Under the pieces are notes generated by a model. That model made no database searches. It was not told where the DNA came from and saw only the letters and a program-made list of their open reading frames with translations. Shown here piece after piece: positions 25,001 to 37,000 of a stretch of DNA of 64,000 nucleotides (position 1 is its first letter; each line of letters begins with the position of its first letter). Position numbers and translations under genes: made by a program. Source of the DNA: Oikopleura dioica (Eukaryota > Animalia > Chordata); the NCBI GenBank assembly GCA_907165135.1, contig OU015567.1, positions 8,556,001 through 8,620,000 of the forward strand, written 5' to 3'.

Positions 25001-28000
25001 CGGTGGCGGGGCGAAGCCGACCCGAAGGGGAAGCCAGTCTCGTTTATTCAATTGAGTCCGTGACGGGGCGAAGCCGACCCGAACGGGAGGCCAGTCTCGT
25101 TTATTCAATTGAGTCAGTGACGAGGCGAAGCCGACCCGAAGGGGAGGTCAGTCTCGTTTATTCAATTGACTCAGTGACGAGGCGAAGCCGACCCGAAGGG
25201 GAGGCCAGTCTCGTTTATTCAATTGAGTCTGTGACGGGGCGAAGCCGACCGGAAGGGAGGCCAGTCTCGTTTATTCAATTCAGTTTGCGACGGGGCGAAG
25301 CCGACCCGAAGGGGAAGCCAGTCTTGTTTATTCGATTGAGTCTGCGACGGGGCGAAGCCGACTCGAAGGGGAGGCCAGTCTCGTTTATTCAATTGAGTCA
25401 GTGACGGGGCGAAGCCGACCCGAAGGGGAGGCCAGTCTCGTTTATTCGAATGAGTTTGCGACGGGGCGAAGCCGATCCGAAGGGGAGGCCAGTCTCGTTT
25501 ATTCGCAGACTTAATTGAATAAACTGGACTGGCCATTCGGATCGACCTGGCCCCGTCCCAGACTGAATTGAATAAACGGAACCGGCCTCCCTAGGGGCGG
25601 CTTGGCCCCGTCGCAAACTCAATTGAATAAACGGAACCGGCCTCCCTAGGGGCGGCTTGGCCCCGTCGCAAACTCAATTGAATAAACGAGACTGGCCTCC
25701 CTTCGGGTCGGCTTCGCCCCGTCGCAAACTGAATTGAATGAACGAGACTGGCCTCCCTTTGGGTCGGCTTCGCCCTGTCACAGACTCAATTGAATAAACG
25801 AGACTGGCCTCCCCTTCGGGTCGGCTTCGCCCCGCCACAGACTCAATTGAATAAACGAGACTGGCCTCCCCTTCGAGTCGGCTTCGTCCCGTCGCAGACT
25901 CAATTAAATAAACGAGACTTTCCTTCCCTACGGGTTAGGGTTATATTTCAGCATTTTGTTGATACTAAGAGCGTGAACCGCTTTGAACCACTGTGAACCG
26001 GGCGGTTAGCCAAGTGATCGAAAATCAGTTTGAAAGACTCTTTTTAGTAGAGAAGCATTTTGATATACATATTTCAATATTTTGTGAATACTCGAGCGTG
26101 AACCGTTCGGAACCGCTGTGAACCGGTCGGTCAACGGAGTGGTTTTGTTTGAAAATCTGTTGGAACTACTTCTTATCAAAAAATATGCATTTTGATATAC
26201 ATATTGCCGGATCTCAATCCATCCAAAGGTTTGGACCGCGACGAACCACCAGAATGACCAGCTGGTTCAAAAAATATCACCTCGATGAATTCAGTGATTA
26301 CTTAGTAGGGTTGGCCAAAAAAAGGGATGGTCCTTTGATTTCCTTAAAACTTTCCTTGATTGTATATTTGGGTCTATAAAATAATATTTTTCAAAAAATT
26401 TGGAAAAAAAATTTTCGGGTACCCATTTTTGGAGGCTTGAAAGTAGCCGAAAAGTGGTTTTTTCTCAATAACTTTTTTCTAGTACCACTTTTCAGAAGTT
26501 TTTCTTTTAGATTTAGATAGAGCTCATCAAGGCGGTCTTTTTGAGCCGTCGGATGAGTCTCTAGCGGTATCGGAAGACACTTTTTTTTTCGTGGAAGGTG
26601 TGAGGAAGAGGGCTAAAATTATAAAAATTTTGTTTTTTATAGTTTTTTAGTGTATTATCAATTTAATCCGCTTTTACAATTTGAAAAACGTTTCGATGCC
26701 CTAAAACATCACCCATGAACCAAGGGGGCCCGGGTTCGAATCCCAGTGAGACCATTTTTTTTTGAACACGCTAATTTTTTCGAGATCAATTATTGGAGTT
26801 TATTGAAGTGTTCAACGGTTTGATTGAACAGTTCTTTCAATGATCTTTTCTTTTTCAACTTTGATTGAATGATTTCTTTGTCCTCTGCAGAAAGCTGTTT
26901 GTTGATATAGCCCAGAACATGACCTCGAAACTGATGAAGTGAAACTTTCACTGGGTAGTTTGGCTGCACAAGCTGTGTGAATGTTTTCAAGCACTGTTTA
27001 TCGTCAGCCTAAAGGAAAAATAATGCATCAGATCGAACTACTATTCAACCTCGTTGATGGGAGACGGCCAAAGCTTATGTTCTGCGATAACGGCTTCAAA
27101 AACTGCCACTTGTGTTCGATTTTTTTTCGCCTTCTTCAATATCGGACAGCATTCTCGCAATAGAATCATTATGGTCGGATCTTCTTCTCTCCGTGATAGA
27201 AGCTTCTTTGGAAGAGGCATTGGCCATGAACTGGCCGAGTTTCTGCTCGAAGTCAGTCTGTCGTCGCCAAAAAGAGAAGGTCATATTGAAGCGACTCATC
27301 ACTGCTTGTTGGAACTTGAACGTGTCCATATTATACTTCGAGGAGAATGAGTCTTTAGCTGATCCGAAGCTTCTCTCGCAGTCCTTATTTAAAGTTATGT
27401 ATTTTGTTGTATGCGGACAAATATAAACCTGATTTGTGAATGATATTTCTTTTGCGAATGGAAAGCTGCATTCATTCACGAAATCGCCGAACCGTTTCTC
27501 AACAGCGTGAAGACGCATTTTGATGCACTCGTCGAGGAACTTGGAGTTCGATGTATCTCCAGAGATTTCCAATACAACATCTTCGAATCCAAGTTCCCAA
27601 GAGGAACTGTCGATTTCTTTCGCCCTTTTCAAAAGGAATAAAGCAGGAGAAGAAGATGAGAGAACATCTTTAAGAACTTGCTTGAAATGCTCCTCAAGAG
27701 ACAGATATTGTTCTGAGTTCATCAGGCCGGACACTTTTGACCAGTAAGGACTCACGATGACGGAATAAACCATCGCCGAGCTGGCGAATTCAATGATCGT
27801 CTGCGCTTTATTGTCTTCCATAACCTTCGCATCGTCAGTGAGAGCGAGCTCGAACCGGATGAAATCGACAATATCGCTGTAGTTTGTTGCGATTCGCTGG
27901 AGATTTCTGGTAAGATTACCAAAACTAAGAAAAATGAATATAACTGTTTTCATCAAGATAAATATACCGAACATGACTTTGCATTTCAAGCGGCTTTGTC

Positions 28001-31000
28001 ACTTTCTGTAGACCATCACGAGATCGAAGGGCTTCAAGATAAATTTTGAGCTTGCTGCCTTGGGAACCATGAAGTCCATGGCTCCTGGAACACGTCAAAT
28101 ATGCTTCACAAAACTGCAAGATATCATCAAAAACGTTCTGGATGCAAGCTCGGATACACTTCTCCATGTGACAGACCTAACGGAATAATTCATTTTCTCG
28201 AAAAATATGTCGCAAACAATTACCTTATGCATCGAGCATTTCAGATGAAGCCTTTCTCTTGGCGTGATTTTATCCAAGGTTTCCATGATAAGCTTGCAGC
28301 TTTTAAGTGCGTTCGCCGCAGAATCGCTCGCTGTCGCCATGCACTACAAAGAGTTTAATGCCGTTTCTGAAACTAAAGAAACCTTTGAAGCGAAATGCTG
28401 CTGAGTTTCGTCTGGAAAACTTGAGAGATAAGACTGAAAGGCTTCGCGGACGGTTTCAGACTTTTCATCAGGAATGGCGACCAGTTGAAAAATATAGCAT
28501 TCTGTTCCGGATCTGATCGTGAATGATTGGAACTTTGTCGAAGCAATTTTTGATCCATCCGCTCCCAAAACAAAGTCATCGCAGTCTCGCAAAACTCGAA
28601 CTAGCTGTTCCTTGTTCATTTCCTCAGTGCAGGTGGCAAGCCGCCTAAGATTTCTGGAGCTGAGTCCTCGCGCCTTCTCTGCAACGACAAATTCCTCCGC
28701 CACTTTTTGCGCCTGAATCGAACTAAACGGCTGTTAAAATTTTTCATTTCTAAGGAAATATCACCTTAGGTTATTCTCACTCATGAGCTTCAAAAGCGAA
28801 AACTTTTCTTTGCTATTCGTCACACTTTCCGCCTTTTCCTCTTCAATTATTTCATCGCTGTAATTGGATGAGGTCGACTCAGCAACAGATTCTGTGTCGG
28901 ACAATATTTCGTGAATGTTCTCATCGACTCGGAGCAGGTCGAGAATTTTTCTTGCATGATGAGCTCGAAAACGAGGAAATTCGCGAATTCGCTTGATAAC
29001 ATCTTCTTTCAACATTGATGAGCTATCAATTTGCGTTTCTTCCACAACTTGAATTGCGGAAGAGGTTTCTTCCGTATTTTCCGACTCTTTCAAGTCCATC
29101 ATATCGTCACAACTCATTGTATGGCTGGTATCCAAAGAAGAGGCCATCGTGTCGTAGTTGGAATCAGTGATCGACATGTTCATAGGTTCTTCGCAAGATT
29201 CGTCCTGATCAGTATTGCTCAACATACTTGAATCGAAGTCGGATTCTGACGAGAAGTCCAACGGTTGATGGGGAACGTACAGCTCGATGTCCTCTTCCTT
29301 TGGAAAAATGAGAAGTTTCTTTGCCAACGCCCGGATATTCCGTTGAAGAAATACTTGACAGTTGAATCCCTTCACAATCAGCTGACGGGCGAGTTTCAAG
29401 CTTCGCGCTTCCAGTTTATCTTTGCTTTCTTTTCGGCGCGATAAAGCGAGCTGTTTGACATCCATTCCCGCATTTTTAGCCAACAAGGCGATTTTCATTG
29501 GTTGCTCGAGAACTGCAGAAGGACCGGCCTTTTTCGAAACAAACGACATTTTTCGCAAACAATGAAGATTTCTGAATAATATCTTTTAAGTTTAAGTTAA
29601 TCACATTTTCTGAATGAACAAAATAATAAGTACGCAAAAATAGATTTAAGAAGTTGAAATAATGAAAAAGAAACCCTTTGCGTGTAAGCAGCACTTACAC
29701 GCATCTTTTACTCACAGAAACCTATAAAATTAGAATAGTCAAATCGCTTAATCCTGTGTGTAAATTGCACTTACACACAGTTTTATTTACGAAAAAATAT
29801 CTATTTTGGGGGATGCGGCGGTAAAAAAAATGAAAAAATGAACAATAGTTGACCACGTGTCTTTCGAAAAAAATGAATCTTCATTTGGAAACAAGCTTCT
29901 CAAAAGACACTTTTGAGGGGTTACCGGTGCCCACCCGGCGACTTCATGCTCGGTCATGCCTTGGTCAAGCAGCGTCCACCGGAGAGAGCACTGTCCTGTG
30001 TCTCCCCAGCTTCTGCCTCCCAAACCGGCTTCCACTCCGCATCCAAAGGATGGCCGTCTCTCGATCGGATCACCATAGGTTGTTCTACCTATGGGGAGGC
30101 CTCCAACCACCGGAGTTACGCGTGTTAGGCGCTTGACCTCAGAGGGAAGGGAGAGATGCCTCCACCTGTGAAAGATATATAATTGTATTCACAGGCTTCT
30201 TAGGCATCCCCCTCAGCAGGAAAAAGTACCTGACGCCGCCGCATCGTCAGGCTTTTCCCTGCTCCGTAGCATGACCGGCGAAGCCGATTTACCGAGGAGG
30301 GTGGTTCTCACTCGTCTCCCACTTAAGGACCTTGGCAGATCGGGGAAGGGTTTAGTCCGGGTCGGGCTGGGGTAGCCTCAGGAGCCAGCGCGGCGTACCC
30401 TGAACCATCTGCCAGTCACCGGCCCGGACAAGGCCTCGTCCCTTCCCGTCGATCCGCCGGGGATCCCCTTTGGCGCCCGACAGCTTCTTCTGGCAAAAGA
30501 TCTGTGGGCGCCCCTTCCTGATCTTGAGTCTTTTTATTTTATTTTCAAATATAAAAACTATTTTATTAATTAATATGATTAAATTAATTTACATGTAAAA
30601 TAAGTAAATAAAAATAAGGGTGTCACTATGTTAATTTTAGGAAGAAATTATGTCTACCTCCTAGAGATTAAAAAAATACTTTTTACTTTCCTCCTCCTCT
30701 TCTTCATCGCCATCTTCCTCCTCAACCTCCTCTATTTCGCCTCCGACTCTCCACGATCCTCACAACCGAATTTTCCCTTCACCAACTTCTCTTCCTCGGC
30801 TGGAATTCTTATGCCAGAATTTCCGCCAATGCCGAGCAGCTAGAGAAAATAGTGCAATTTTCTCTCGGTCTTGCAGACGGCTGGTTAGGGGAATTATTTT
30901 ATTTTATATAATTAATCGATATTTTATTATTAAAAGTAATAAATAAGTAAATTAAGTTGGAACAGTGATGAAAACAATCGACGGAATCGTGCTTTTTCCG

Positions 31001-34000
31001 AACAAAGTGAAGAAAACGCTGGTCCTTTTCTTTCAATTTGATGAAAGATTCATATTTTCAAATAAAAACACATTTTCTGAAGCCTCCTCCAAGTATCCAT
31101 GGCTTGGTGGAGAGTGGTGTTGACCGCTCCACCGGACGTTTTGGGTTCGAATCCCAGCGCCGCAATTTTTTTCAAAGTTTCAAATTTTTTAAGGGGTGAT
31201 AAAAGTATGTTCCGATAACGCTAGGGTATCACAATAAATACAAAAAATGTTTACTTTTATATAAACATTTATTTCGAGAAAAAATGACTGAAAAATCGTT
31301 TTCATTTTTTTGGCCAACCCTATTACTTAGCTTCAAGAAAAGCTATCGATCGTAATCATAGCACGCCTAGAACAAAAGTTCAAATTCTTGAATTCTCGTA
31401 TCTGGTAGTTTCAGTCAACTTCGAGGCGCTAGAAAATCTCAGAGGATACCCAGATCATTTATTTTCCCAGTTATGAGAAGAAAACGCTTTGAAAGCTCCA
31501 ATATACGCCATTGACCATGTTTCTAGCACCTATAAACCAGAAATAATTCTTGGAGATTCCTTTTAAAAACGTGAAATTTTCCATATTTGTCCTGTTTGGA
31601 CATAAGAAAAAATTTTTAAAAAATATTCCCAATAGCTATGCATAAAATTTTTATTGAGGATAAAAGCCAAGTGTCTGTTATATATAAACACCCATTATTG
31701 AGATTGCGGCTTTTAGATTTTTTGAGATAAGGCTGTTTTAATATAGCTATTTAAAGAAAAATATGTCACTTGAAAAGTAAAAGGCGTCGCAACTGTCCTT
31801 ATTTTTCATTTCTGCCTCTGAAATTTGTCTCGCATATATTTTGAACCCTTTACTGCAAATAACAAAGAGAAAATAGCTCATCAGCATTCATTATATATTG
31901 AATTCGATTTTTTAAAGCTTTTTAGCCAAAAAATAGCCATTTTTAGGGCTTTTTAGCCTCTCTGGTGGTTCGTCGCGGTTCAAACCTTTGGATGGATTGA
32001 GATCCGGCAATATGTATATCAAAATGCATATTTTTTGATAAGAAGAAGTTCCAACAGATTTTCAAACAAAACCACTTCGTTGACCGACCGGTTCACAGCG
32101 GTTCAAAACGGTTCACGCTCCGAGTACTCACAAAATATTGAAATATGTATATCAAAATGCTTCTCTACTAAAAAGGAGTTCTTCAAACTGATTTTCGAAC
32201 AGAACCACTTGGCTAACCGCCCGGTTCACAGTGGTTCAAAGCGGTTCACGGCCTGAATACTCACAAAATATTGAAATATGTATATCAAAATGCCTATCTA
32301 CTCAAGAGGACTCTTTAAAACTTACTTTCGAACAGAACCACTTGGCTTACCGCCCGGTTCACAGCGGTTCACGGTCTGAATATTCACAGAATATTGAAAG
32401 ATGTATATGAAAATGCTATTCTACTCAAGAGGAGTCTTTTAAACTGATTAACGAGCCAAACCACTTGGCTAACCGCCCGGTTCAGAGCGGTTAAGAGTGG
32501 TTCACGCTCTAAGTATTCACAAAATGCTGAAATATAAATATCAAAATGTATCTCTAGCTTTAGAAGTCATTTTAACAGATATTCGAACCAAACTACTTGG
32601 CTAAATGACTGGTTCGTCGTGGTTCAAGACAGTTCATCTTCTATTTACAGTCCCATTCATAAAATTGAGTCTGCGACGGGGCGAAGCCGATCCGAAGGAG
32701 AGGCCAGTCTCGTTTATTCAATTGAGTCGGTGGCGGGGCGAAGCCGACCCGAAGGGGAAGCCAGTCTCGTTTATTCAATTGAGTCCGTGACGGGGCGAAG
32801 CCGACCCGAACGGGAGGCCAGTCTCGTTTATTCAATTGAGTCAGTGACGAGGCGAAGCCGACCCGAAGGGGAGGTCAGTCTCGTTTATTCAATTGACTCA
32901 GTGACGAGGCGAAGCCGACCCGAAGGAGGCCAGTCTCGTTTATTCAATTGAGTCTGTGACGGGGCGAAGCCGACCGGAAGGGGAGGCCAGTCTCGTTTAT
33001 TCAATTCAGTTTGCGACGGGGCGAAGCCGACCCGAAGGGAAGCCAGTCTTGTTTATTCGATTGAGTCTGCGACGGGGCGAAGCCGACTCGAAGGGAGGCC
33101 AGTCTCGTTTATTCAATTGAGTCAGTGACGGGGCGAAGCCGACCCGAAGGGGAGGCCAGTCTCGTTTATTCGAATGAGTTTGCGACGGGGCGAAGCCGAT
33201 CCGAAGGGGAGGCCAGTCTCGTTTATTCGCAGACTTAATTGAATAAACTGGACTGGCCATTCGGATCGACCTGGCCCCGTCCCAGACTGAATTGAATAAA
33301 CGGAACCGGCCTCCCTAGGGGCGGCTTGGCCCCGTCGCAAACTCAATTGAATAAACGGAACCGGCCTCCCTAGGGGCGGCTTGGCCCCGTCGCAAACTCA
33401 ATTGAATAAACGAGACTGGCCTCCCTTCGGGTCGGCTTCGCCCCGTCGCAAACTGAATTGAATGAACGAGACTGGCCTCCCTTTGGGTCGGCTTCGCCCT
33501 GTCACAGACTCAATTGAATAAACGAGACTGGCCTCCCTTCGGGTCGGCTTCGCCCCGCCACAGACTCAATTGAATAAACGAGACTGGCTCCCCTTCGAGT
33601 CGGCTTCGTCCCGTCGCAGACTCAATTAAATAAACGAGACTTTCCTTCCCTACGGGTTAGGGTTATATTTCAGCATTTTGTTGATACTAAGAGCGTGAAC
33701 CGCTTTGAACCACTGTGAACCGGGCGGTTAGCCAAGTGATCGAAAATCAGTTTGAAAGACTCTTTTTAGTAGAGAAGCATTTTGATATACATATTTCAAT
33801 ATTTTGTGAATACTCGGAGCGTGAACCGTTCGGAACCGCTGTGAACCGGTCGGTCAACGGAGTGGTTTTGTTTGAAAATCTGTTGGAACTACTTCTTATC
33901 AAAAAATATGCATTTTGATATACATATTGCCGGATCTCAATCCATCCAAAGGTTTGGACCGCGACGAACCACCAGAATGACCAGCTGGTTCAAAAATATC

Positions 34001-37000
34001 ACCTCGATGAATTCAGTGATTACTTAGCTTCAAGAAAAGCTATCGATCGTAATCATAGCACGCCTAGAACAAAAGTTCAAATTCTTGAATTCTCGTATCT
34101 GGTAGTTTCAGTCAACTTCGAGGCGCTAGAAAATCTCAGAGGATACCCAGATCATTTATTTTCCCAGTTATGAGAAGAAAACGCTTTGAAAGCTCCAATA
34201 TACGCCATTGACCATGTTTCTAGCACCTATAAACCAGAAATAATTCTTGGAGATTCCTTTTAAAAACGTGAAATTTTCCATATTTGTCCTGTTTGGACAT
34301 AAGAAAAAAATTTTTAAAAAATATTCCCAATAGCTATGCATAAAATTTTTATTGAGGATAAAAGCCAAGTGTCTGTTATATATAAACACCCATTATTGAG
34401 ATTGCGGCTTTTAGATTTTTTGAGATAAGGCTGTTTTAATATAGCTATTTAAAGAAAAAATATGTCACTTGAAAAGTAAAAGGCGTCGCAACTGTCCTTA
34501 TTTTTCATTTCTGCCTCTGAAATTTGTCTCGCATATATTTTGAACCCTTTACTGCAAATAACAAAGAGAAAATAGCTCATCAGCATTCATTATATATTGA
34601 ATTCGATTTTTTAAAGCTTTTTAGCCAAAAAATAGCCATTTTTAGGGCTTTTTAGCCTCTCTGGTGGTTCGTCGCGGTTCAAACCTTTGGATGGATTGAG
34701 ATCCGGCAATATGTATATCAAAATGCATATTTTTTGATAAGAAGAAGTTCCAACAGATTTTCAAACAAAACCACTTCGTTGACCGACCGGTTCACAGCGG
34801 TTCAAAACGGTTCACGCTCCGAGTACTCACAAAATATTGAAATATGTATATCAAAATGCTTCTCTACTAAAAGGAGTTCTTCAAACTGATTTTCGAACAG
34901 AACCACTTGGCTAACCGCCCGGTTCACAGTGGTTCAAAGCGGTTCACGGCCTGAATACTCACAAAATATTGAAATATGTATATCAAAATGCCTATCTACT
35001 CAAGAGGACTCTTTAAAACTTACTTTCGAACAGAACCACTTGGCTTACCGCCCGGTTCACAGCGGTTCACGGTCTGAATATTCACAGAATATTGAAAGAT
35101 GTATATGAAAATGCTATTCTACTCAAGAGGAGTCTTTTAAACTGATTAACGAGCCAAACCACTTGGCTAACCGCCCGGTTCAGAGCGGTTAAGAGTGGTT
35201 CACGCTCTAAGTATTCACAAAATGCTGAAATATAAATATCAAAATGTATCTCTAGCTTTAGAAGTCATTTTAACAGATATTCGAACCAAACTACTTGGCT
35301 AAATGACTGGTTCGTCGTGGTTCAAGACAGTTCATCTTCTATTTACAGTCCCATTCATAAAATTGAGTCTGCGACGGGGCGAAGCCGATCCGAAGGAGAG
35401 GCCAGTCTCGTTTATTCAATTGAGTCGGTGGCGGGGCGAAGCCGACCCGAAGGGGAAGCCAGTCTCGTTTATTCAATTGAGTCAGTGACGAGGCGAAGCC
35501 GACCCGAACGGGAGGCCAGTCTCGTTTATTCAATTGAGTCAGTGACGAGGCGAAGCCGACCCGAAGGGAGGTCAGTCTCGTTTATTCAATTGAGTCTGTG
35601 ACGGGGCGAAGCCGACCGGAAGGGAGGCCAGTCTCGTTTATTCAATTCAGTTTGCGACGGGGCGAAGCCGACCCGAAGGGAAGCCAGTCTTGTTTATTCG
35701 ATTGAGTCTGCGACGGGGCGAAGCCGACTCGAAGGGAGGCCAGTCTCGTTTATTCAATTGAGTCAGTGACGGGGCGAAGCCGACCCGAAGGGGAGGCCAG
35801 TCTCGTTTATTCGAATGAGTTTGCGACGGGGCGAAGCCGATCCGAAGGGGAGGCCAGTCTCGTTTATTCGCAGACTTAATTGAATAAACTGGACTGGCCA
35901 TTCGGATCGACCTGGCCCCGTCCCAGACTGAATTGAATAAACGGAACCGGCCTCCCCTAGGGGCGGCTTGGCCCCGTCGCAAACTCAATTGAATAAACGG
36001 AACCGGCCTCCCCTAGGGGCGGCTTGGCCCCGTCGCAAACTCAATTGAATAAACGAGACTGGCCTCCCCTTCGGGTCGGCTTCGCCCCGTCGCAAACTGA
36101 ATTGAATGAACGAGACTGGCCTCCCCTTTGGGTCGGCTTCGCCCTGTCACAGACTCAATTGAATAAACGAGACTGGCCTCCCTTCGGGTCGGCTTCGCCC
36201 CGCCACAGACTCAATTGAATAAACGAGACTGGCCTCCCCTTCGAGTCGGCTTCGTCCCGTCGCAGACTCAATTAAATAAACGAGACTTTCCTTCCCTACG
36301 GGTTAGGGTTATATTTCAGCATTTTGTTGATACTAAGAGCGTGAACCGCTTTGAACCACTGTGAACCGGGCGGTTAGCCAAGTGATCGAAAATCAGTTTG
36401 AAAGACTCTTTTTAGTAGAGAAGCATTTTGATATACATATTTCAATATTTTGTGAATACTCGGAGCGTGAACCGTTCGGAACCGCTGTGAACCGGTCGGT
36501 CAACGGAGTGGTTTTGTTTGAAAATCTGTTGGAACTACTTCTTATCAAAAAATATGCATTTTGATATACATATTGCCGGATCTCAATCCATCCAAAGGTT
36601 TGGACCGCGACGAACCACCAGAATGACCAGCTGGTTCAAAAATATCACCTCGATGAATTCAGTGATTACTTAGCTTCAAGAAAAGCTATCGATCGTAATC
36701 ATAGCACGCCTAGAACAAAAGTTCAAATTCTTGAATTCTCGTATCTGGTAGTTTCAGTCAACTTCGAGGCGCTAGAAAATCTCAGAGGATACCCAGATCA
36801 TTTATTTTCCCAGTTATGAGAAGAAAACGCTTTGAAAGCTCCAATATACGCCATTGACCATGTTTCTAGCACCTATAAACCAGAAATAATTCTTGGAGAT
36901 TCCTTTTAAAAACGTGAAATTTTCCATATTTGTCCTGTTTGGACATAAGAAAAAATTTTTAAAAATATTCCCAATAGCTATGCATAAAATTTTTATTGAG

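Follow-up and report, generated by a model that had tools for sequence, protein, structure and literature searches.

Several mobile elements encode a structured non-coding RNA beside their recombinase or nuclease gene. Examples are the bridge RNA of IS110, which lies upstream of the open reading frame (ORF), and the omega-RNAs of TnpB, IscB and Fanzor. Retroelements and viruses carry cis-acting RNAs (packaging signals, constitutive and RNA transport elements or CTE/RTE, and elements of the post-transcriptional regulatory or PRE type) that serve RNA genomes or the export of unspliced RNA. A cut-and-paste DNA transposon has no RNA intermediate, and to our knowledge no eukaryotic cut-and-paste transposon is known to depend on a large structured non-coding module. 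Here we describe a GC-rich, structure-forming non-coding block of 619 nt upstream of the transposase gene in a hAT transposon of the tunicate Oikopleura dioica (OKI2018_I69). The element lies in a window of 64,000 nt (contig OU015567.1, positions 8,556,001 to 8,620,000), which is the whole stretch of DNA that was analysed and to which all coordinates without a prefix refer. We call the family of this element A, and two sister families of the same genome B and C.

Structured 5' leaders are also carried by the transposase mRNAs of the bacterial elements IS10, IS200 and ISPpu9, where they are thought to set transposase expression (e.g. PMC4513863, PMC8450116). The leaders have in common with our block that a non-coding, structure-forming segment is carried in the element directly upstream of the transposase ORF. 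The bacterial leaders are short, with translation-blocking stems of tens of nt and antisense small RNAs. The hAT blocks, in contrast, are eukaryotic, measure 470-680 nt, have several domains, are more conserved than the transposase, and are probably removed by splicing or trans-splicing. Like the bridge and omega-RNAs, our block is structured, lies within a mobile element and adjoins the recombinase-type gene of that element. It differs from them in that the protein is a hAT DDE transposase and not a DEDD recombinase or RuvC nuclease, and in that the block has no complementarity to the element ends. With the retroelement and viral cis-acting RNAs it shares the form of a GC-rich, multi-helix module of several hundred nt that is conserved above the adjoining coding sequence; unlike them, it sits in a cut-and-paste DNA transposon and matches no Rfam family.

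A structured non-coding block upstream of the transposase gene

The block and the domains of its predicted fold are as follows.

29917..30535, - strand (transposase-sense, weakly favoured): GC-rich structured non-coding block, 619 nt
29951..30277: multibranched domain with closing helix CGGUCAUGC:GCAUGACCG; on both strands its helices reach p ≥ 0.5
29963-70 : 30131-38: sub-domain inside the multibranched domain, closed by GGUCAAGC:GCUUGACC
30154-30209 and 30215-30263: two long hairpins within the multibranched domain
30326..30467: long hairpin arm of ~140 nt with six stacked helices (partition function)
30472..30512: terminal hairpin GGCGCCC..GGGCGCC (partition function)

GC content is 0.55-0.63 over 29900-30499, compared with 0.31-0.34 in both flanks of the block. 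The only ORFs that touch it encode 107 aa (- strand) and 95 and 71 aa (+ strand), and none of them has a Pfam match. A preliminary description of the window had reported a sharply bounded GC-rich block without a credible ORF, borne by a transposon, inside its terminal inverted repeats (TIRs), ~370 bp upstream of the ATG of a DDE transposase. The GC profile, the ORF list and the Pfam search confirm the first part of this description. The rest is also correct: the block lies inside a hAT element with TIRs (26306-26323 and 31305-31322) and a target site duplication (TSD), 368 nt separate its edge from the ATG, and the DDE transposase is identified by invariant columns, a Hermes-like fold and a profile match (see below). 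AUGs are abundant in the - strand RNA sequence of the block on inspection, which makes a role as a scanned 5' untranslated region impossible.

The block folds far better than its composition would predict. We compared its folding energy with that of dinucleotide-preserving shuffles. The + strand of 29917-30535 folds at -261 kcal/mol (z -7.18, with 0 of 20 shuffles as good), and the - strand at -285 kcal/mol (z -6.38, again with no shuffle as good), while a 619-nt control taken from the transposase coding region gives a z of only -1.14. A z of about -7 on shuffles of this kind means that the folding is not an effect of composition.

Helices were called from the partition function at p ≥ 0.5, and nearly all of those that had been read by eye were recovered. 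These include CGGUCAUGC:GCAUGACCG at 29951-59 : 30269-77, GGUCAAGC:GCUUGACC at 29963-70 : 30131-38, the GCCUCCC:GGGAGGC helix, the CAUAGGU, GAUGCCU/CCUGUGAA and AGCAGG/CCUGACG hairpins, and a long arm at 30338-30454. The proposed outermost helix, which would close the block 5' to 3' (29926/30504), is possible but loses in the ensemble to the local hairpin at 30472-30512. Pairing is almost entirely Watson-Crick; G-U pairs make up 6 of 161 on the + strand and 13 of 155 on the - strand.

The statement that the block matches no known RNA family is borne out by a scan with the covariance models of Rfam 15, which gave no match at gathering score in the whole window. The best sub-threshold match, to ceN51, scored 25.4 bits where 65 are required, and the B and C blocks yielded nothing usable at either gathering score or permissive thresholds. 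ARAGORN called no tRNA in the element. No tandem repeats were found in the family-A and family-B blocks.

Two small features mark the edges of the block. A 7-bp inverted repeat, AAAAGAC/GTCTTTT (29902-29908 and 30528-30534), brackets it exactly, and a separate perfect hairpin, CTCAAAAGTGTCTTTTGAG, lies at its sense-strand 3' edge (29899-29917).

A conserved block in the same slot in two sister families

Families B and C were found by a six-frame search of the genome with the A transposase. The transposase of family B (L013 and L014) is 50-63% identical to that of A at the amino-acid level, and that of family C (L018 and L019) about 25%; B and C are only about 25% identical to each other. In the stretch that leads from the 5' subterminal region to the transposase ATG, both families have a block of 470-680 nt with 56-68% GC. 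Blocks of this type are present in only four copies in the genome.

L013:1241-1751 (G000:C2): family B block
L014:3140-3640, minus strand: family B block
L018:3109-3575 (G000:C1): family C block
L019:2806-3273: family C block

Together with 170-350 nt upstream, the block is by far the best-conserved part of the B and C elements. Between the copies of family C, identity is 92-99% in the block, 80-91% in the coding sequence and 65-86% in other non-coding sequence. Between the copies of family B, the corresponding values are 95-99% in the block, 76% in the coding sequence and 77-81% in the flanks. The highly conserved B block contains frameshifting indels, and thus coding is excluded.

The B and C blocks also resemble each other. 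They have six exact, colinear motifs in common, each of 8-14 nt and at similar spacing: CGGTGACC, CCCTTGAGCAAGG, CCCRCAACCCRAGCC, ACCCCGAC, GGGGAAACTACG and GGAGACGGGTCATG. The chain of exact matches between B and C has a weight of 97, compared with a maximum of 61 in 100 shuffles. When B and C were folded separately, eleven helices were found at equivalent positions relative to the motif anchors. Among the 62 pairs of these helices, 35 are identical, 5 are changed on one side, 22 are changed on both sides and 0 are broken, whereas sliding one partner by 1-3 nt breaks 36-53 pairs. As the eleven helices were hand-picked, we added an anchor-interpolation test, in which the 14 high-probability helices of C were matched in B over 83 of 92 bp; the null was 66.5 ± 5, and in 300 trials a value this high never occurred. 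An unguided MAFFT alignment of B and C, which is visibly wrong in part, gave 9 pairs with two-sided changes in RNAalifold.

Substitutions within the families were placed on the minimum free energy structures of single sequences. They fall in sense-strand stems in 2 of 12 cases in B (P=0.0007) and 4 of 10 in C, and in antisense-strand stems in 4 of 12 and 7 of 10, respectively. Changes from G-C to G-U were also seen in the blocks within the families. With its motifs and helices, the B/C-type block is the best target for an RNA model.

The sequence around the block is arranged similarly in the three families. A conserved acceptor-like motif of the form YAG/AA(A)TCT (the slash marks the junction) occurs 12-25 nt before the transposase ATG in A (29564-29580), B (L013:2281-2296) and C (L018:4103-4123), which suggests splicing or spliced leader (SL) trans-splicing at this point. 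The annotated coding sequences of B and C begin after the acceptor and exclude the block. In B and C, AT-rich, TATA-like spacers abut the sense-strand 5' edge of the block, comparable to the spacer in A.

Directly upstream of the family C block lies a GC-rich segment (L018:2780-3050), which is conserved at 92-95% between the C copies and is likely to be the promoter of family C. GCGC palindromes are numerous in it, and it has boxes of the sequences GGCCAATCA and GCGTATAAGCG.

The hAT element, its transposase and its second copy

The family-A element that carries the block is 5,017 bp long, with 18-bp TIRs and an 8-bp TSD. Its features outside the block are listed here.

26298..26305: left TSD TTACTTAG, 8 bp, an exact repeat of 31323-31330
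26306..26323, + strand: left TIR TAGGGTTGGCCAAAAAAA, with a perfect inverted copy at 31305-31322
26793..29549, - strand: spliced hAT transposase gene with long minus-strand ORFs; ATG at 29549-29547
28603..30346: segment absent from the sole other family-A copy (G000:C5:256374-259635), a 1,744-bp internal deletion
29564..29580, - strand: candidate 3' splice or trans-splice acceptor ATTATTCAG/AAATCTTC, with AG at 29573-29572, 22 nt before the ATG
30546..30555, - strand: TATA-like TTTATATTTG in an AT-rich spacer, 11-20 nt upstream of the sense-strand 5' edge of the block (sequence reading; putative promoter)
31305..31322, - strand: right TIR, an inverted copy of TAGGGTTGGCCAAAAAAA
31323..31330: right TSD TTACTTAG

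The element is a genuine hAT transposon with a Hermes-like DDE transposase. hAT elements have short TIRs that start with YARNG and 8-bp TSDs; here the TIRs begin TAGGG and the TSD is of that length. The transposases of the superfamily have DDE catalytic residues, with a C/DxxH motif that follows the second D, and this pattern is present here as well. An annotated family-B protein (P0007) maps onto positions 29540-26793 of the window, and the ORF or exon at 28095-28340 contains SDSAANA...CSMH, that is, the SD..A and CxxH motifs. In an alignment of 22 transposases, D210, D276, C305, H308, R378 and N385 are invariant, and the consensus has a C-terminal TN...E..F motif. The exons of the window's transposase, which were searched singly and never joined, match the family profile with an E value of 1.7e-36. 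The structural evidence for a Hermes-like fold, in which an all-alpha domain is inserted into an RNase H core, comes from the family-C relative, whose AlphaFold model has a predicted local distance difference test (pLDDT) score of 76.7; its top ten PDB fold matches are all Hermes transposase (E 3e-7 to 8e-6; probability 1.00).

The Pfam hAT domains (PF05699, the BED finger and DUF4371) did not match any exon, the family-C ORF or ten database relatives, and PDB profile searches gave no sequence-level link of the transposase to solved hAT structures. Taken with the Hermes-like fold, we read the failure of Pfam as extreme divergence. The clade of this transposase has about 50 database representatives (P0003-P0053), none of which Pfam recognises among those tested, and its link to Hermes is by predicted fold only.

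The genome holds one full copy of the A block and one remnant of 189 nt at 99% identity. The remnant belongs to the second family-A copy, in which the 1,744-bp deletion has removed 430 of the 619 nt of the block together with exon 1 of the transposase. Having lost exon 1, this derivative is defective, and it tells us little about any need for the block. The preliminary description had held that absence of the block from other copies would count against a transposon-encoded RNA; the block is largely absent from the sole other copy, but a deletion derivative of this kind is not a meaningful case. Scans of metagenomes with the block gave no match.

Discussion

We propose that, within the transposase transcription unit, the block forms a structured RNA module, a leader or an outron. 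This is the reading that we prefer, and we hold it tentatively, at not quite an even chance. We consider the block significant because its fold is exceptional, because it is non-coding, and because its slot has been kept under constraint in two related families. This constraint in the sister families fits a functional module, which probably acts at the RNA level. The strongest new evidence concerns the non-homologous counterpart in B and C and not the window's block itself.

We infer transcription of the block, its strand, its removal by splicing and its function. In our model, the AT-rich, TATA-like spacer that adjoins the block on its sense-strand 5' side would first drive transcription, which would begin at the block or ahead of it. 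The block would then fold as a leader or outron, so that the transposase unit would, in effect, open with a non-coding 'cistron'. SL trans-splicing is used by Oikopleura for its operons; we suggest that either this process or splicing may act at the acceptor and detach the block from the coding mRNA. The final part of our model is what the block would do once separated: it could set the output of transposase transcript or protein, or it could persist as a stable RNA. Among the options raised in the preliminary description, the structured 5' leader fits best, and we found no support for a guide RNA, a captured host non-coding RNA (ncRNA) or an RNA polymerase III (Pol III) gene on the + strand. 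A guide should pair with the ends of the element, but with the terminal 120 nt the block shares matches of no more than 7-9 nt, which does not exceed shuffles in A, B or C. A captured host ncRNA is disfavoured, there being no further copy of the block in the genome. The T5 run that had been noted after the block on the + strand is present. However, T4/T5 runs also occur inside the block on both strands, which makes a Pol III gene on the + strand doubtful, and the comparative evidence leans slightly towards the transposase-sense strand.

Several results weigh against the leader model. The A block has no homologue and hence no comparative support of its own; thus, all of the comparative evidence is an analogy of position with B and C. 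Neither blastn (word size 7) nor a motif search, exact-match chaining or a covariance model revealed any similarity of the A block to the B or C blocks, whichever strand was compared. The chain weight of the A block against B or C is at control level. Four of the six B/C motifs need 3-4 mismatches in the A block on either strand and ACCCCGAC needs 1-2, and a mismatch search found two motifs wholly absent from the A + strand. The covariance model built from C has no match in the A block; even in B it reaches only an E value of 0.5 at the correct place, which is not significant, as the model is too specific. Helix conservation from B to C is as significant on one strand as on the other and does not discriminate between them, and the G-U counts of the A block (13 minus, 6 plus) are not decisive for its strand. 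The B and C blocks are also no thermodynamic outliers, with z values of -3.2 and -1.8 in B and -0.9 and -2.1 in C. Two further families of the same transposase that were examined in the genome have no comparable block. Last, the high-identity tract of ~1 kb in B and C could be the product of gene conversion, although gene conversion fails to explain the conservation of motifs and helices between the families and the avoidance of stems by substitutions.

The transposase of A is closer to that of B than that of B is to that of C, yet the A and B blocks are dissimilar. Thus, the block is not simply co-evolving with the transposase. Judging from these comparisons, either A or B may have exchanged its module, or that of A may have diverged beyond recognition. 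We also considered whether the A + strand carries two of the B/C motifs in diverged form and with the right spacing, but this did not withstand the controls.

The slot could instead work as DNA, with the block acting as a promoter, enhancer, GC island, insulator or protein-binding region whose hairpins are incidental or form in DNA only. The position upstream of the transposase gene would suit such a role, as would the CCAAT and TATAAG boxes in the adjoining GC-rich segment of C, the almost purely Watson-Crick helices of A, which are equally good on both strands, and the blindness of the helix-conservation tests to strand. We nevertheless regard a DNA-level role as unlikely, because protein-binding DNA does not predict two-sided changes between B and C or G-C to G-U changes within the families, and because substitutions within the families avoid sense-strand stems more than antisense stems. 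An independent ncRNA gene on either strand, with its own promoter and terminator, whose product acts in trans, for example as a scaffold or cofactor in a ribonucleoprotein (RNP) with the transposase, seems to us rather unlikely. In its favour, the block is a discrete unit with sharp boundaries, each of the three families has a T-run behind it (T5 in A, on the + strand; T4 to T10 in B and C, on the sense strand), and in B and C conservation is higher in the block than in the transposase; by eye, the order of branched domain, long arm and end-closing helix on the A + strand also resembles the sense-strand layout of B and C. A type-3 Pol III gene has an upstream TATA box and proximal sequence element (PSE), a T-run terminator and no internal run of T4 or longer; in A, a TATA-like box lies at 30546-30555 on the sense strand, and the T5 run follows the block on the + strand. 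T4/T5 runs, however, interrupt the A block on both strands and occur inside the B block as well. No promoter of the PSE type was identified, there being no PSE consensus for the host species to score against, and the block lacks complementarity to the element ends. In C, moreover, high conservation runs ~220 nt beyond and ~350 nt upstream of the block, which suggests a longer RNA polymerase II unit.

For family A taken by itself, the block might be functionless filler: a GC-rich piece of DNA that was captured or rearranged in a young element with two copies, and whose fold is a by-product of composition and history. There is one full copy with no homologue in anything searched, it is unlike the B/C block despite the 50-63% identity of the A and B transposases, and the deleted copy shows that it can be lost. 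We think this improbable: a z of about -7 on dinucleotide-preserving shuffles speaks against composition, the deleted copy is defective anyway for want of exon 1, and three families whose non-coding DNA can otherwise no longer be aligned all have ~600 nt of GC-rich sequence in this slot. It is more improbable still that the hairpins are a cluster that is processed into miRNA- or siRNA-like small RNAs, which would control the element or flag it for silencing. Several hairpins of 40-140 nt that are nearly perfect and matches to Rfam miRNA families could be taken to point this way, but the matches are weak (17-19 bits, far under thresholds of 84-93 bits), the stems, at 17-19 bp, are shorter than is usual in animal pre-miRNAs, and nested long-range helices that close multibranch domains are atypical of small-RNA precursors.

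Returning to the leader model, if the block acts as RNA it would represent a new class of transposon cis-regulatory RNA, or possibly a cofactor RNA, and it would tie transposon expression to the trans-splicing and operon machinery of Oikopleura. Three hAT families of a very compact chordate genome each reserve 470-680 nt for such a block. The B/C module, with its six invariant motifs and covarying helices, is concrete enough for modelling and testing, and the A block would be a second type in this slot. A bolder hypothesis, to which we give very little credence, is that the block is a multi-domain RNP cofactor, scaffold or ribozyme that is needed for transposition or for escape from host control, with the A block a second, non-homologous type in the same role. 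If true, it would be the first RNA partner of a eukaryotic cut-and-paste transposase.

Other features of the element and its surroundings

Halves resembling the 3' part of a tRNA occur on the + strand near both ends of the element, in the same orientation (26722-26760 and 31100-31175). Each consists of a GGTTCGAATCCCAG T-arm and an acceptor-like end, followed by a run of T7-9. A similar T-arm-like hairpin is present in family B near L013:925. In the 5' region of the family-A element, a 69-nt segment (30956-31024) recurs elsewhere in the genome, in at least eight copies that are 87-92% identical to it; it may be a small repeat or a captured fragment.

A fourth family (D) of the same transposase has a GC-rich minisatellite with periods of 15, 30 and 90 nt downstream of its ORF (L020:4525-5109; G000:C5:7949525-7950109) and no block upstream. 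In the window, nested elements next to the family-A element carry GC-rich arrays at 32596-33730 and 35302-36380, within a multiply repeated region that also contains long inverted repeats with 290-nt arms that are 88% complementary. These GC-rich arrays and minisatellites are repetitive, unlike the non-repetitive block at 29917-30535.

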